Assembly (NCBI GenBank): GCA_002269645.1
Contig: NIVC01001675.1
Span: 28,910 to 92,909, forward strand
DNA from: Macrostomum lignano
Taxonomy: Eukaryota
DNA length: 64,000 nt
Reading direction: 5' to 3'
A model generated the notes under the pieces. The model was not told the DNA's origin, searched no databases, and saw only the letters and a program-made list of their open reading frames with translations. A program made the translations under genes and the position numbers. Below are positions 46,401 through 52,400 of this stretch, one piece after another (the stretch's first letter is position 1; each line of letters begins with the position of its first letter).

Positions 46401-49400
46401 TCATTTCTGCTGAGAGGCAGCCCCAGCCACCGAGTCTCTCCTTGGCGGCATGCGCTCGTTCACCTTGTCGATGGCTTTGGCCTCTTCGAAACCGCTGATC
46501 TTGTGGTTGGGCACGAATCCGCCCACGGCTGCACGGGGCGGGGGAAGGGACGGGTCTCGTTGGCAGGGTGTTGCTGACAGACAGACAGACAGACGGACAG
46601 ACACAGACAGACAGTCAGACAGACAGAAAGACAGTCAGGCAGACAGACAGACAGTCAGGCAGACAGACAGACAGACAGGCAGTTAGACACACAGACAGAC
46701 GGACAGACACAGACAGACAGTCAGACAGACAGACAGACAGAAAGTCAGGCAGACAGACAGACAGACAGGCAGTTAGACAGACAGACAGACATACAGACAG
46801 ACAGACAGAGAGACAGACAGACAGACAGACAGACAGTCACAGACAGACAGACAGACAGACATACAGACACAGACAGACAGACACAGACAGACAGACACAG
46901 ACAGACAGACACAGACAGAAAGACAAAAAGACAGGCGCAGCTCACCGCTAGACAGGGACTCCTTGCCGCCGCTGAGCACACCCATTGGCAGCATGCCGTT
47001 TGGCGTGAGTCCCTTGAGTTCAAGCACGGATTCGGATTCCTCGCGCAGCACGGTAAATACGCGGGCCATTTTGCCGATGGCGCGAATCTTGTTGCGAATC
47101 ACCTCCTTGCGGGCGGCCACGGCGTTTGCTGGGATTGGAGTTGAGTGTCGTGTGGAGTTACAATAGTCTGGGTTGATTTTCAATGCATATGAATGAACAG
47201 ATGAAATTCTCTTCCTTGCACTGATGAGCATTCTATCAGACAGACAGACGAATACTAATCAGCCCTGAATGCGCTGTGGAGTCAAGCTTGGATTTTCAAC
47301 CCATAAAATGTACATAGTACGATAATTTGATACATCTTTTTGCACTAAAGGAATTCACAAGGTCAAACATTTATAGGTCGAATGAGAATTTACTATCGAG
47401 TAAAAAATTTACAACCCAGTTTCTTAATTTGCGCAGACTTATTAAAAACTTTATTGATTCAATCATATAAAAACTACATTCTATACGTCTTATTGCCACA
47501 GATTCCGTAAATTTAATACTTAATGAAATACGCCCGTACACACACAATATTACAAATGCAGAGAAATATAAGGAAAATTAAACACATTAAATATTGGCGC
47601 AATTTTATTAGAATATAAGCGACACAAACAAAAAAGACCAGTTAGCTATTAGAAGCCTTGAGTTAGCCACTTTGATTCTTTTTGTTACCAACACAGAAGT
47701 TAATAAAAACATTGAAAACAGGTAGCACATTAGTTATTTACGAATACGGTTTTTTATAATAAAAACAGCTAAGAAATTATTTAAAGAATTACTTTATATT
47801 TATATTCAACTTTTAATAATTACTCGCTCCTTAAAAAAAAACTATCATAGCTAGTGACTAGTGGTAGACGCTTAAAGTAAACTAACAAAAGCGCTATTCT
47901 AAAAGTTAACTTTTAAAGCGTAAAAAACTTTTTTCATTGCCAAAAAAATTAACAAGTACCTAAAAACCCATTAACTAGATCTAAACTAGATCTAGAATGG
48001 AAACCTAACCATATAAAAACAAATATTTTAATTTCGTGGAATTATGTAATTTTATTGTTTTTATTGGTTTTGTTAAGATGCATTCGTTAAATTACTATAT
48101 GCTGGCCAAACACACTCGGAACCTTTGTTCAATGCTAATAATGCTTCTTTAGAGAACTTACGCTGCTGCGCCAAAGAGAGTAGCTGAGCTGCATAATAAG
48201 AAAGCAATTTTTTATTAGCTATTTAACTAATTTGCTCAAATAGGTACATTACAATAACAGAGAGAATAGTCGAAATAAATAACTTACGCAGAAATAGAAA
48301 ACAGAAACTGCCAACCAGATTAAGAGTAAATAAAAAATAAAATATATAACAAACATAGATTGAGGAAATTTTTTAAAGTAAATTTTCAACAATTAAAATC
48401 TTACCAGTTGGCACTAAAATGATTTGTTTTAAATAGAAGAAAAAATTAAAAATTCTCAAGTGAAACAGATTAATGGCACCAATAAATAAAATAATAAACA
48501 AATTGAAAAATTCCAAAGTGATTTTCAAATCTTTGATTGAAAAAAGCAATAAAAATAATCAGACAGAAAAAGCAAAACTATGACTGAATTCTATTAATAT
48601 CTTTGTTAGTTACATGAATAATACATTAAGCTTATTATACGCAATTGGCTTTTAAAATTCTAAAAAAGCCACAGAAGCTTGGGGTTTTTAATATAATCTA
48701 AAAGCAATTGATATGCCAACTATATTCTACATGGCGATATGCGGAAACTCCAGTGAATTCACTTCGGTGACTTGAGAAGATGAAAATAATAATTATATTG
48801 TAAATCAGTTGCATACAGTATAATTAATTTTGAATTCAAAGACGGTCTCCTCAGCTGTCTACGTACTTACCTCGACTTTGGCACAAAACACTGGCCGCGC
48901 TCAGTGCGTCTAATTAGAAATGGGATTTTTGGGACTTTTTTGATTTTGGAAAGCAAGCGAGATTTTAGGGCGAGGCCTACTGTTGGGTTCGGTAGGCTGC
49001 TGCAGCTTAAAATAGGGGGATTTTGATTAGTGCAGTCTGGGGTAGAGTGGCTTATATTGGAGTCACCTAGAATGGTGTGGAGTCACGTAGAGTCGGTAGA
49101 ACGCTGGAATAGTGTAGAGGGGCTAGAGTAGAAGTAGAGTGGAGTAGAGACGTGTAGAGTGGATTAGAGTGGTTTGGAGTGGGTTAGAATGGGGTAGAGA
49201 AAGTATATTGTGGTAAAGTGGGGTAGAATGGGATAAAGTGGGTTAGAGTGGGTAGAGTGGGGTATAATTAGTTAAAGAGTGGGGTAGAATGGAGTAGAGT
49301 GGCTTAGAGTGGGGTAGATTGAGGTAAAGTGGGGAAGAATGGGGTAGAATTGGGTAGAGTGAATTAGAGTGGGGAAGAATGGAGTAGAGTGGGGTAGAGT

Positions 49401-52400
49401 GGGGAAGAATGGAGTAGAGTGGCTTAGAGTGGGGTAGATTGAGGTAAAGTGGGGAAGAATGGGGTAGAATTGGGTAGAGTGAATTAGAGTGGGGAAGAAT
49501 GGAGTAGAGTGGGGTAGAGTGGGGAAGAATGGAGTAGAGTGGGGTAGAGTGGGGAAGAATGGAGTAGAGTGGGGTAGAGTGGGGAAGAATGGAGTAGAGT
49601 GGGGTAGAGTAGGAAGAATGGAGTAGAGTGGGGTAGAGTGGGAAGAATGGAGTAGAGTGGGGTAGAGTAGGAAGAATGGAGTAGAGTGGGGTAGAGTGGG
49701 GAAGAATGAAGTAGAGTGGGGTAAAGTGGGAAGAATGGAGTAGAGTGGGGTAAAGTGGGTAGAATGGAGTAGAGTGGGGTAAAGTGGGTCAGAATGGAGT
49801 AGAGTGGGGTAGAGTGGGTAGAATGGAGTAGAGTGGGGTAGAAAATTCAGAATTGGAAATGGATCAAACAGCAGGAGTGGTTGAGTGAGCAATGCTACGA
49901 CCGTATGCAGCTACGGGTGCTATGCAGTCCCACACCTGACCTCGGTTATTTATACGAGTTAACGAGTATTTACCAATGTAACGGGTTGAGAAATGGACAA
50001 ATACAAAAATATTCCCAACTAGCGAATTGCATTGTAAAGTTAAGCTATCAGGCCTTCAAATCCGCCAGATTGCAAGTTGACAGTGAATAGCAGCAACTGA
50101 AGAAATGAAGTTCCGACCAGGATAAATAAATAATACTAAGAAAGATGGCAATACTCGAACTGCACTACTGGTTCACATTTTGGGGTTCGGGAAGTAGTAT
50201 AGAGCAGACAAAAACACTGGAAAAAGGAAAAAAGCACTAGAGGCTGCTAATATTACTAAAGCGGTACAAAATCAATTTAGACAACTTTCATTCATCAAGG
50301 ATGTCCATTGTCATAAGTTTTTTTTCAAAATTAATTGTATCGAGGTTTAAATTAATCTGTCAATCAATAAATTTTTACTAGCTATCGATACTAAAAGATG
50401 AATTGTTTTGTGACAGAATCAAACTGAAATCATTGGCTTGCATCATACTAAACTATATGATAAGCTCTCTTACCCTTAGAAGACTTTTTGTCTGAAAGAA
50501 ATTCACAATAAGAAGGTTAAATATCTCGCCGGGTTTTGCTAGCGGATTTATTTTATAAATGTAAAAAACTTTGTTAATATGGGTGATTGGAAATTTCAAA
50601 TTAAACTCAATCAGCTACGACTTCATGCTAGAAAAACAGCATAAACACACGTTACTTGCTACTGTTGAAGGCTGGAAAGTAGTCTGAATAACGTGTAATA
50701 GCATATCTATGCTGTAAATATTAAAATATCTGCCCAATAAAGACTTGGACAGAGAAAAAAACAAAACCAAAATACTCGACGTTGCAACAATGCCGTTTCA
50801 AATTATTATGATAAATAATTTAATAATTAATAACTTCTTGAACTCACCATCGGCTCCCTCTTCGCTGTCAGCAACCAGCTCGTCGTCGGAGCAAATGCTC
50901 AGAACGTTAACCAACATCTCGGTAACTGGTCAAATATGCGATTGAGTAAGACTAATTAGTTTCTAATGCAAAATCGAAATATTCAAACAATATAAAACCC
51001 AAGCACGAACCTTTCTCGCCGACAAACGGCAGGCTCCAGGTGAAAACGTCCATGAAATTTGGCAGCCAATAAGGATGCGGCGAACAGTTGAATTGGCGAA
51101 TGTTCATCACGTTGTTCTCGTACTTTAGAATGGCCGCTGCATGGGGTGGCAGGTGAGGGGGTTTGTCAAGAGCGTGTGTACATTGGGGTGGCGGGTGAGG
51201 GGGCTTGTCAAGAGCGTGTGTACATTGGGGTGGCGGGTGAGGGGGTTTGTCAAGAGCGTGTGTACATTGGGGTGGCGGGTGAGGGGTGTATCAAGAGCGT
51301 GTGTACATTGGGGTGGCGGGTGAGGGGGCTTGTCAAGAGCGTGTGTACATTGGGGTGGCGGGTGAGGGTGTGTCAAGAGCGTATGTACATTGGGGTGGTG
51401 GATGAGGGGTGTGTCAAGAGCGTGCGTACATTGGGGTGGCGGGTGAGGGTGTGTCAAGAGCGTGTGTACATTGGGGTGGTGGATGAGGGGTGTGTCAAGA
51501 GCGTGCGTACATTGGGGTGGCGGGTGAGGGGTCTTGTCAAGAGCGTGTGTACATTGGGGTGGCGGGTGAGGGGGTTTGTCAAGAGAGAGAGTGTACATTG
51601 GGGTGGCGGGTGAGGGGGTTTGTCAAGAGAGAGAGTGTACATTGGGGTGGCGGGTGAGGGGGTTTGTCAAGAGAAAGTGTACATTGGGGTGGCGGGTGAG
51701 GCAAGTTTATCCAAGCGCGCACGAATTGGTATCGGCAATAAAATAAAGTTGCAGTCAAAAGCACAACAGAGGCAATAAAAATAAGCAACAAACCCTTATT
51801 GTTGTAAACATCCAGATAGTTAGGCGCGCTGAATATAGTAATTAGCGAAGGGAATCCGGTTGCTTGACTCTTGCGGTACATCCGGTAGCTGGAGATGCAG
51901 ATGTTGGATAATATAATTAATAATATAAAAGTGCTGGAGAACTTGCTGTGGAGCACCCGGAGGGAAATGTCACGCTAAAAGAAATACGATTATTACAGTG
52001 AAAACATATGCCTCCATGGTGTGTGCCAGACCACCGCCTCCCAGATCCCATTTTTAGCCCCCTTCCTCTTCCCTCTTGCGCTCGCACAACGTCCTCTACT
52101 GCTCCGAAATGCCTAAGAGATGAACTTTCTTCGGCAAAATCTTCCCTAACCCACCAATTATTCTTGCAGACGCCCGGCAGACGCGGAAAAGGACAGAGAG
52201 AAGATGATAGAGAGGCTAAGGTCAGAGAAGGCATGAAAATGAAACATGGTATTGGATACACACGCGCGCATTTTAACATGTTTTGGATATAAAACATCCG
52301 TTGTTGTTAACACTGGATAAAGACAGACAGACAGACAGACAGATCAGAAAGACAGATGGATCAATCCCAACATAGCTCAAACCTTACCCAGCGTCCTGAG

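Follow-up and report, generated by a model that had tools for sequence, protein, structure and literature searches.

A cluster of in-frame micro-exon units in the LR1 intron of calcineurin A from Macrostomum lignano

Activation of calcineurin depends on a disordered regulatory domain, and splice variants that alter the two linkers of this domain are known in vertebrates, where their functions have barely been characterised. A calcineurin A (CnA) gene of the free-living flatworm Macrostomum lignano raises the question of whether such a linker can be varied by a whole set of very small exons. The gene lies on the minus strand of a 64,000-nt stretch of contig NIVC01001675.1 (positions 28,910 to 92,909 of the forward strand, assembly GCA_002269645.1), hereafter the window, and all window positions are counted from its first letter. 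It was located by tblastn with human PPP3CA and refined to 10 coding exons (Table 1), and the protein spliced without micro-exons is 100% identical to M. lignano P0122 (UniProt A0A1I8IAP6). At the DNA level, 3980 nt agree at 100% with NIVC01001675.1 of the Mlig_3_7 assembly (L004). Intron 8 interrupts LR1, the linker between the calcineurin B (CnB)-binding helix and the calmodulin (CaM)-binding domain. A sequence-only reading of this DNA had assigned the gene to calcineurin A, placed the intron between the CnB-binding and CaM-binding helices and listed within it four strong units of 18, 39, 9 and 27 nt; the tblastn search and the exon model bore out the assignment and the place, and the coordinates and sizes of the four units proved exact on the minus strand. 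Here, we show that the 27-nt unit is an expressed exon, and we report strong sequence evidence that the 9-nt unit is a functional exon as well. Intron 8 as a whole is likely to be a hotspot of frame-preserving cassette micro-exons that add residues to LR1.

The in-frame units of intron 8

Exon 8 ends in ...GAGGGAGCCGATG/gtgagt at 50848, with GAT G as its last bases, and exon 9 starts at 47128 as cccag/CAAACGCC, reading CA AAC GCC GTG GCC GCC CGC AAG GAG (slashes mark exon boundaries). All four units between them are multiples of three and in phase 1. When the unit joined to exon 9 is the 27-nt one, the junction codon becomes CCA (Pro), and because the junction codons are limited to GAC, GTG, GCT, GCA and CCA, no combination of units makes a stop, as the sequence-only reading had held. 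There are five GTAAG sites on the sense strand of intron 8 and none on the antisense strand, and four of the five end an open unit of a multiple of three that is preceded by a YAG (pyrimidine fraction 0.5 or more). In first-order Markov simulations of intron 8, such units numbered 0.44 per intron on average, and the probability was about 0.36 for at least one and about 0.075 for at least two; four or more were found in 0 of 2000 simulations, and with the repeat removed the corresponding probability was 0.003. As a further comparison, 34 other 3.7-kb chunks of the window held a mean of 0.35 such units. These results show that the pattern of units as a whole is beyond chance, while on the simulation test alone one or two of the units could have arisen by chance.

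The 27-nt unit is an expressed exon that is spliced into mature mRNA. It is present in the GenBank proteins PAA58423.1 and PAA74440.1 (both 493 aa) and PAA65191.1, the last of which is the model of the window locus, and in all three the sequence runs exactly from exon 8 through 48188-48162 into exon 9, with Pro at the junction as predicted. These proteins were found as members of the 90% cluster of P0122 (sequences P0241 and P0242). Because the GenBank annotation of the Mlig_3_7 assembly was built from RNA-seq with StringTie/TACO and a de novo transcriptome (PMC5730564), the 27-nt exon has transcript evidence. The form of the window gene that skips it is seen only in P0122, a model of unestablished basis whose provenance was not found in a literature search, and the inclusion form is P0241; the exon may be either alternative or constitutive in this gene. 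The upstream flank of the exon carries two UGC motifs, at -18 and -5, and a CTAAT branch point near -27; its donor is gtaagt, and the exon itself is a GC island in the top 2.2% of windows of the same size. An AlphaFold2 model of the 27-nt isoform, made from a 41-sequence alignment, had a mean predicted local distance difference test score (pLDDT) of 46, and nothing was learned from it on the linker.

The evidence for the 9-nt unit comes from an older CnA paralog of M. lignano, here called paralog B (P0124, P0243 and P0244), which shares 88% amino-acid identity with the window gene and was examined in three genomic copies (L005-L007). Fourfold-degenerate sites are 48% identical between the two genes, which is near saturation, and the equivalent intron of paralog B, of about 4.4 kb, is otherwise unalignable with intron 8. 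The best intron match in all three copies was ttcag/TGCCAACAG/gtaag against tttag/TGCCAACTG/gtaag in the window, identical at 17 of 19 bases. Of the two mismatches, one exchanges a pyrimidine for the other at position -3 of the acceptor, and the second is a synonymous ACT>ACA change that retains the peptide VPT. In 300 shuffles, the best match was 11 to 14 of 19 bases and never exceeded 14. In addition, the 9-nt unit is the sole non-repeat, in-frame AG...GTRAG unit of the paralog B intron. The preservation of its splice sites and peptide across saturated divergence shows that the 9-nt exon is under purifying selection, and we consider this strong evidence that it is a functional exon. In the window its acceptor ttttag lies behind a 39-nt AG-free zone without UGC upstream, and its donor is CTG/gtaaga; in paralog B, there are UGCs upstream and a long AG-free zone. 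No annotated model includes the exon, and in the models of paralog B exons 8 and 9 are joined directly.

The 18- and 39-nt units show splice signals of their own. The acceptor of the 18-nt unit, tttctttcag, is the best of the four, with a TTAAC branch-point-like motif at about -26 and the donor AGG/gtaaga, and in composition it resembles intron sequence (GC 0.33). With a GC content of 0.59, compared to 0.37 in its flanks and 0.32 in the unique part of the intron, the 39-nt unit reaches a value found in only 1% of the 39-nt windows of that unique part, and its donor GAG/gtaagt agrees with U1 at 8 of 9 positions. The sequence-only reading had taken all four units for genuine micro-exons; this is upheld for the 27-nt unit by the GenBank proteins and for the 9-nt unit by conservation between paralogs, whereas the 18- and 39-nt units have neither transcript evidence nor evidence of deep conservation.

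Three further candidate matches and sites were considered. The fifth GTAAG follows a 20-nt unit that sits between the 9- and 27-nt exons (Table 1); its inclusion would shift the frame, and a decoy site or a frame-breaking (poison) exon are two possible roles for it. A weaker 6-nt candidate at 47829-47824 (minus strand), also listed by the sequence-only reading, was rejected for its poor splice signals: the acceptor is AAG, the donor is GTAATT, and the AG-free zone is cut to just 10 nt by an AG upstream; moreover, its pyrimidine/acceptor tract is interrupted and differs in two other copies of the gene (L002 and L003). A gcag/CTCAGC match to the 27-nt exon in paralog B has no donor and stands in the wrong order, and was judged to be due to chance. 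An Rfam scan of window positions 46000-52000 gave no credible match.

LR1 inserts in other animals

Exons at this site have been described in vertebrates. Exon 10a of vertebrate Ppp3cb and Ppp3cc is 27 bp long, lies just upstream of the CaM-binding domain and is included in adult skeletal muscle and not in brain (PMC5577920), and in human CnA paralogs the exon 10 or LR1 insert lengthens LR1 by 9 aa (PMC12503234). A 2025 study remarked that little was known of how far LR1 and LR2 splicing is conserved between species, and it went on to address LR2 alone (PMC12503234). The LR1 micro-exon feature is therefore less novel than the sequence-only reading assumed: the 27-nt exon is annotated and the LR1 or exon 10a class is already known, and what is new is the well-supported 9-nt exon.

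Among the homologs retrieved, LR1 usually has 12-16 residues, and inserts occur in many lineages (Table 1), two of which, Echinococcus and Saccoglossus, were checked at the genomic level. The inserts of dog PPP3CB-like and Mobula PPP3CA proteins align at the same junction as the flatworm units. In Echinococcus granulosus, a 30-nt exon, cag/TGCCGGTA...CCGACAG/gtaagag, lies 120 nt into the same phase-1 intron (L008), and in Saccoglossus kowalevskii a 30-nt exon, cag/AATTGATAGG...AGTAAAA/gtaagtg, is found at the same phase-1 junction (L009). In a JGI marine metatranscriptome, sequences of one animal (L026 compared to L023 and L024) differ by a 30-nt phase-1 LR1 insert, ACGGCACATTGGAACTCAATGGGGAAGCAG, which encodes DGTLELNGEA; since the flanks are 100% identical, this is a true cassette event at the LR1 junction. 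The closest environmental relative in LR1 sequence, JGI contig Ga0393225_017540 (L001; P0001), reads GAD/DGGKAILSDQD/AASVAARKEV, with a 10-11-aa insert at the LR1 site, and its AT-rich codon usage is unlike that of M. lignano. The nucleotide sequence of this insert, with ATGGTGGTAAAG and CAATATTATCGGATCAAG, suggests a pair of micro-exons that both end in AAG. A metagenome scan for close Macrostomum relatives gave a best match of 82% identity and no congener.

The flatworm 27-nt exon resembles vertebrate exon 10a in length, phase, position and its xQL[LI] start, and both lie directly upstream of ...AARKE[VI]IRNK of the CaM-binding helix, so that it is plausibly an ortholog of exon 10a. The two systems differ in that vertebrates have one such exon per gene, with inclusion specific to adult skeletal muscle, and the flatworm intron has up to four candidates. 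The tick peptide AYLLSLG shares 5 of 7 residues with the flatworm 27-nt exon (A.LLSL), peptides too short for statistics, and the Echinococcus 30-nt exon starts with TGCC and ends with ACAG/gtaag, resembling the TGCCAAC(T/A)G/gtaag of the Macrostomum 9-nt exon. The invertebrate LR1 cassettes (Echinococcus, Saccoglossus and the marine animal) share the position, phase 1, strong gtaag donors and a length of 27-30 nt; as far as seen, they are single exons in their introns and their sequences are mostly unrelated to one another, and these exons could reflect either homology or repeated origin at a permissive site. Taken together, these results suggest that LR1 micro-exon splicing is widespread across Bilateria, in flatworm, cestode, hemichordate and vertebrates, and likely also in tick and mussel.

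A similar hotspot is known at LR2, where short alternative exons (vertebrate exon 13; C. elegans tax-6 exons 13a/13bc) alter the length of the disordered linker beside the CaM-binding domain (PMC12503234), and where the isoforms are tissue-specific with distinct functions (PMC12503234). LR2 lies downstream of the CaM-binding domain and LR1 upstream. The LR2 intron of the window gene (46945-46529) is 86% (GACA)n and holds no candidate exon. LR1, like LR2, appears to be a recurrent and possibly ancient micro-exon site across Bilateria.

Proposed effect on the linker and competing explanations

The baseline LR1 of the window gene has 15 residues and a net charge of -4. The 27-nt exon extends it to 24 residues, and the four units together would extend it to 46. 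Any inclusion would lengthen LR1 from 15 to between 18 and 46 residues. The 18-nt unit (DKKSSK) would add two net positive charges (from -4 to -2) and two serines in a basic context, and the inserts would contribute Ser, Cys and a small hydrophobic LLSL patch. Judging from the sequence, the units would be recognised through a YAG acceptor with an AG-free upstream zone of 23-39 nt, paired with a consensus GTAAG donor; these donors appear stronger than the constitutive donors of the gene, which are GTGAG, GTTCG and GTTTG, and the CTAAT branch point and UGC motifs probably also take part in recognition of the 27-nt exon. The constitutive exons of the gene have GC contents of 0.45-0.61. Intrinsic disorder is established for the CnA regulatory domain, and the association of CaM is affected by charges that lie outside the CaM site (PMC7456046); in addition, elements of the regulatory domain occlude the LxVP groove that is formed by the CnB-binding helix and CnB (PMC7456046). 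On established calcineurin biophysics, an altered tether length and altered electrostatics may change how the CaM-binding and autoinhibitory elements are linked to the catalytic core, and with it the on-rate of CaM and the release of autoinhibition.

A more far-reaching scenario is that LR1 is an ancient bilaterian site at which the 27-nt exon is the true ortholog of exon 10a, that the site has expanded in Macrostomum into an array of up to four independently selectable cassettes, and that VPT acts as an LxVP-like pseudo-substrate in cis; we regard this combination as improbable. The VPT exon would place a hydrophobic-x-V-P motif directly behind the CnB-binding helix, and this motif could dock in cis into the LxVP groove. 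Inserts in Echinococcus (FEVP, after ...TFE) and mussel (LDVP) also create LxVP-like motifs beside this helix, and the 9-nt exon of M. lignano paralog B would yield MDVP, an observation that is speculative as to its meaning.

Several observations weigh against intron 8 as a hotspot of cassettes and against parts of the proposed effect. The RNA-seq-guided annotation gives one type of coding sequence per gene copy, with the 27-nt exon in and the other three units out, and we infer that the 18-, 39- and 9-nt units, if used, are minor, tissue-restricted or missed by aligners. No transcript, expressed sequence tag or protein with these three units was found in searchable collections, which were queried with the all-inclusive LR1 peptide of 136 aa and then of 71 aa, with matches seemingly limited to about 0.75-1.75 times the query length; the matches were read-through gene calls of other animals, and no M. 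lignano fragment was among them. Searches with the unit peptides found no counterparts of the 18-, 39- and 27-nt units in the paralog B introns. All four units and their splice sites are kept in the homeologous copies L002 and L003 (the window being L004), and this conservation is uninformative because only about 2.5% of background sites are variable. The acceptor of the 39-nt unit is weak (ttag, with the CTAAT motif 5 nt away), and the unit holds two of the few homeolog substitutions, one Ala>Thr and one synonymous change in L003 that leave the frame and splice sites intact. Vertebrate exon 10a, E[RQ]LIYG[NQ]KK, agrees with AQLLSLAQQ at just 3 of 9 residues (Q2, L3, L/I4), and the effect on CaM activation is one that we infer entirely. 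Weighing the splice signals and composition of the two units against these points, we lean towards the 39-nt unit being a real exon, and the chances that the 18-nt unit is a real exon appear even.

It is possible, but somewhat unlikely, that only the 27- and 9-nt units are real, with the 18- and 39-nt units being pseudo-exons that arose by chance or pairs of decoy splice sites and never entering mature mRNA. The 0.44 chance units expected per intron leave room for this, as do the probabilities of finding at least one or two, and neither unit has database evidence or a paralog B counterpart; the intron-like composition of the 18-nt unit and the weak acceptor and non-synonymous change of the 39-nt unit point the same way. 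However, under the null both would arise by chance with a probability of only about 0.07. The GC content of the 39-nt unit ranks in the top 1%, comparable to that of the validated 27-nt exon, the acceptor of the 18-nt unit surpasses the other three, and four of five GTAAG sites in the intron fit the in-frame pattern. A stricter version, in which only the annotated 27-nt exon matters, is constitutive here and is accompanied by coincidence in the rest of the intron, would agree with the three transcript-based GenBank models, all of which include the 27-nt exon and nothing else, and with P0122 being a gene prediction that missed the micro-exon. We consider this very unlikely, since the 9-nt unit and its splice sites are the single conserved element between the paralogous introns (17/19 against a null of at most 14/19) and since the significant excess of in-frame units contradicts coincidence.

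The sequence-only reading had suggested a combinatorial, possibly neural, micro-exon code of up to 16 isoforms; such a programme would be a neuronal one dependent on SRRM234/eMIC. Exons of this class are likewise 3-27 nt long and frame-preserving and lie in disordered linkers at the surface of signalling proteins, and three of the four units (9, 18 and 27 nt) are frame-preserving and no longer than 27 nt, the 39-nt unit exceeding this length. UGC near the 3' splice site, an AG-free zone and a strong branch point are features of eMIC-dependent exons (PMC8797185), and the CTAAT and UGC motifs of the 27-nt exon, together with the UGCs and AG-free zone of the paralog B 9-nt exon, resemble these signals. 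In contrast, UGC is missing close to the 3' splice sites of the 18-, 39- and 9-nt units of the window, the 5' splice sites of fly eMIC exons are weak whereas the Macrostomum units have consensus GTAAG, and the text of the fly eMIC study makes no mention of calcineurin (PMC8797185). Moreover, the vertebrate exon at the LR1 site is muscle-specific (PMC5577920), and the 27-nt exon is the main form in whole-worm assemblies, unlike a neuron-restricted exon. Because the resemblance to eMIC exons is incomplete and the vertebrate counterpart is a muscle exon, the neural reading is a possibility only, and we judge it to be improbable. The units could also be stepping stones for a stepwise (recursive-type) removal of the 3.7-kb intron and be spliced out themselves, as strong 5' splice sites shortly after 3' splice sites in a comparatively long intron might indicate. 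This is so improbable that it can nearly be discounted: the 27-nt unit is kept in mature mRNA as annotated coding sequence, contrary to what defines a recursive splice site, all four units are stop-free multiples of three although intron removal needs neither property, and the exonic change in the 9-nt unit between the paralogs is synonymous. Intron 8 is also short for recursive splicing, which counts against the stepping stones as well.

If intron 8 is a hotspot of cassettes, as we think likely, three micro-exons appear to be missing from the M. lignano annotation, including the 9-nt exon that is present in two paralogs. M. lignano is tractable for transgenesis and may have as many as four cassettes in a single intron, and it would thus lend itself well to studying how the length and charge of LR1 affect activation by CaM.

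Feature coordinates and neighbouring sequences

The coordinates of the features are collected in Table 1, together with the splice junctions by which each form could be recognised and the LR1 inserts of other animals.

Table 1. Features of the M. lignano CnA gene and its intron 8, splice junctions, and LR1 inserts of other animals
Feature	Position	Strand	Sequence or description
CnA exon 1	59252-59210	minus	refined tblastn model
CnA exon 2	57499-57175	minus	refined tblastn model
CnA exon 3	53860-53749	minus	refined tblastn model
CnA exon 4	53143-52998	minus	refined tblastn model
CnA exon 5	52605-52388	minus	refined tblastn model
CnA exon 6	51888-51794	minus	refined tblastn model
CnA exon 7	51136-51011	minus	refined tblastn model
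CnA exon 8, constitutive	50925-50848	minus	end of CnB-binding helix and start of LR1; ends in phase 1
CnA intron 8	50847-47129	minus	3719 nt, phase 1; host of the micro-exon units; unique part GC 0.32
18-nt unit (DKKSSK)	50491-50474	minus	ttctttcag/ACAAAAAGTCTTCTAAGG/gtaagag; candidate cassette micro-exon
Minisatellite in intron 8	49114-49842	minus	729 nt, about 20% of the intron; 10/30-nt period, CCCCACTCTA-like on the gene strand
39-nt unit (13 residues)	48909-48871	minus	tctaattag/ACGCAC...GTCGAG/gtaagta; candidate cassette exon
9-nt unit (VPT)	48413-48405	minus	cattttag/TGCCAACTG/gtaagat; cassette micro-exon
20-nt unit, fifth GTAAG (donor G at 48287)	48288-48307	minus	ggcag/TTTCTGTTTTCTATTTCTGC/gtaagtta; pyrimidine-rich, not a multiple of three
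27-nt unit (AQLLSLAQQ)	48188-48162	minus	ttatgcag/CTCAGC...CAGCAGC/gtaagtt; annotated exon
CnA exon 9, constitutive	47128-46946	minus	end of LR1 and CaM-binding helix
CnA exon 10	46528-46400	minus	refined tblastn model
Predicted junction, exon 8 to 18-nt			GCCGATG/ACAAAAAGTC
Predicted junction, 18-nt to 39-nt			TCTAAGG/ACGCACTG
Predicted junction, exon 8 to 39-nt			GCCGATG/ACGCACTG
Predicted junction, 39-nt to 9-nt to 27-nt			GTCGAG/TGCCAACTG/CTCAGC
Predicted junction, exon 8 to 9-nt			GCCGATG/TGCCAACTG
Predicted junction, 9-nt to exon 9			CCAACTG/CAAACGCC
Junction, 27-nt to exon 9			GCAGCAGC/CAAACGCC
Junction, exon 8 to exon 9 (skipping)			GCCGATG/CAAACGCC
Dog PPP3CB-like LR1 insert			ERLIYGNKK; protein alignment
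Manta (Mobula) PPP3CA LR1 insert			EQLIYGQKK; protein alignment
Mussel (Mytilus) LR1 insert			VPILIQGQR; protein alignment
Acorn worm LR1 insert			ELIGDSVKSK; protein alignment and genomic check
Ticks LR1 insert			AYLLSLGLSSG; protein alignment
Echinococcus LR1 insert			VPVAATTPPT; protein alignment and genomic check
E. granulosus LR1 exon	L008 17491-17520, CM038615.1		TGCCGGTAGCTGCAACGACTCCGCCGACAG/gtaagag

The M. lignano genome is noted for tandem repeats and recent duplications (PMC5730564). The sequence-only reading had described intron 8 as largely unique, unlike most other introns of the window; the minisatellite qualifies the first part of this description, but the contrast itself is real, given a minisatellite share of about 80% in the other sizeable introns. 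Minisatellite or microsatellite makes up about 80-86% of introns 2, 3, 4, 6 and 9 of CnA (within 46529-57174), the periods being 4, 21, 26, 28 and 42 nt, and intron 2 alone has a 2.1-kb array of a 26-nt unit. The minisatellite of intron 8 differs in length between gene copies and has no part in the proposed mechanism.

At 57308-57310 (minus strand) in exon 2, the window copy reads GAAGCCCGGTG where both homeologous copies read GAAGCCCCGGTG. This is a 1-nt deletion in a run of C that breaks the reading frame of the window copy, and PAA65191.1 is N-truncated for this reason (400 aa, starting with MKLFEVGG). Either the PacBio-based assembly contains a homopolymer error at this point, or one of the three copies has truly been inactivated by mutation.

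Three other features were observed in the window. An open reading frame (ORF) on the plus strand at 40575-40835 resembles what we take to be the end of a cysteine-rich-protein-type LIM domain, an assignment that is unconfirmed, and it had no Pfam match at E ≤ 0.01. About 1.2 kb upstream of CnA exon 1, 60428-60706 (minus strand) and the adjoining ORF at 60710-60967 form a remnant of an ISXO2-like (IS1595-type) DDE transposase (PF12762, E = 3e-9). Downstream of CnA and on the same strand, the neighbouring gene is of the ERG/KCNH2 type: its potassium channel exon at 27353-27796 (minus strand) covers the C-linker and the cyclic-nucleotide-binding-homology region, and it matches hERG chains with E = 1.8e-68 and the Anopheles ERG domain 4l11 with E = 1.9e-71.

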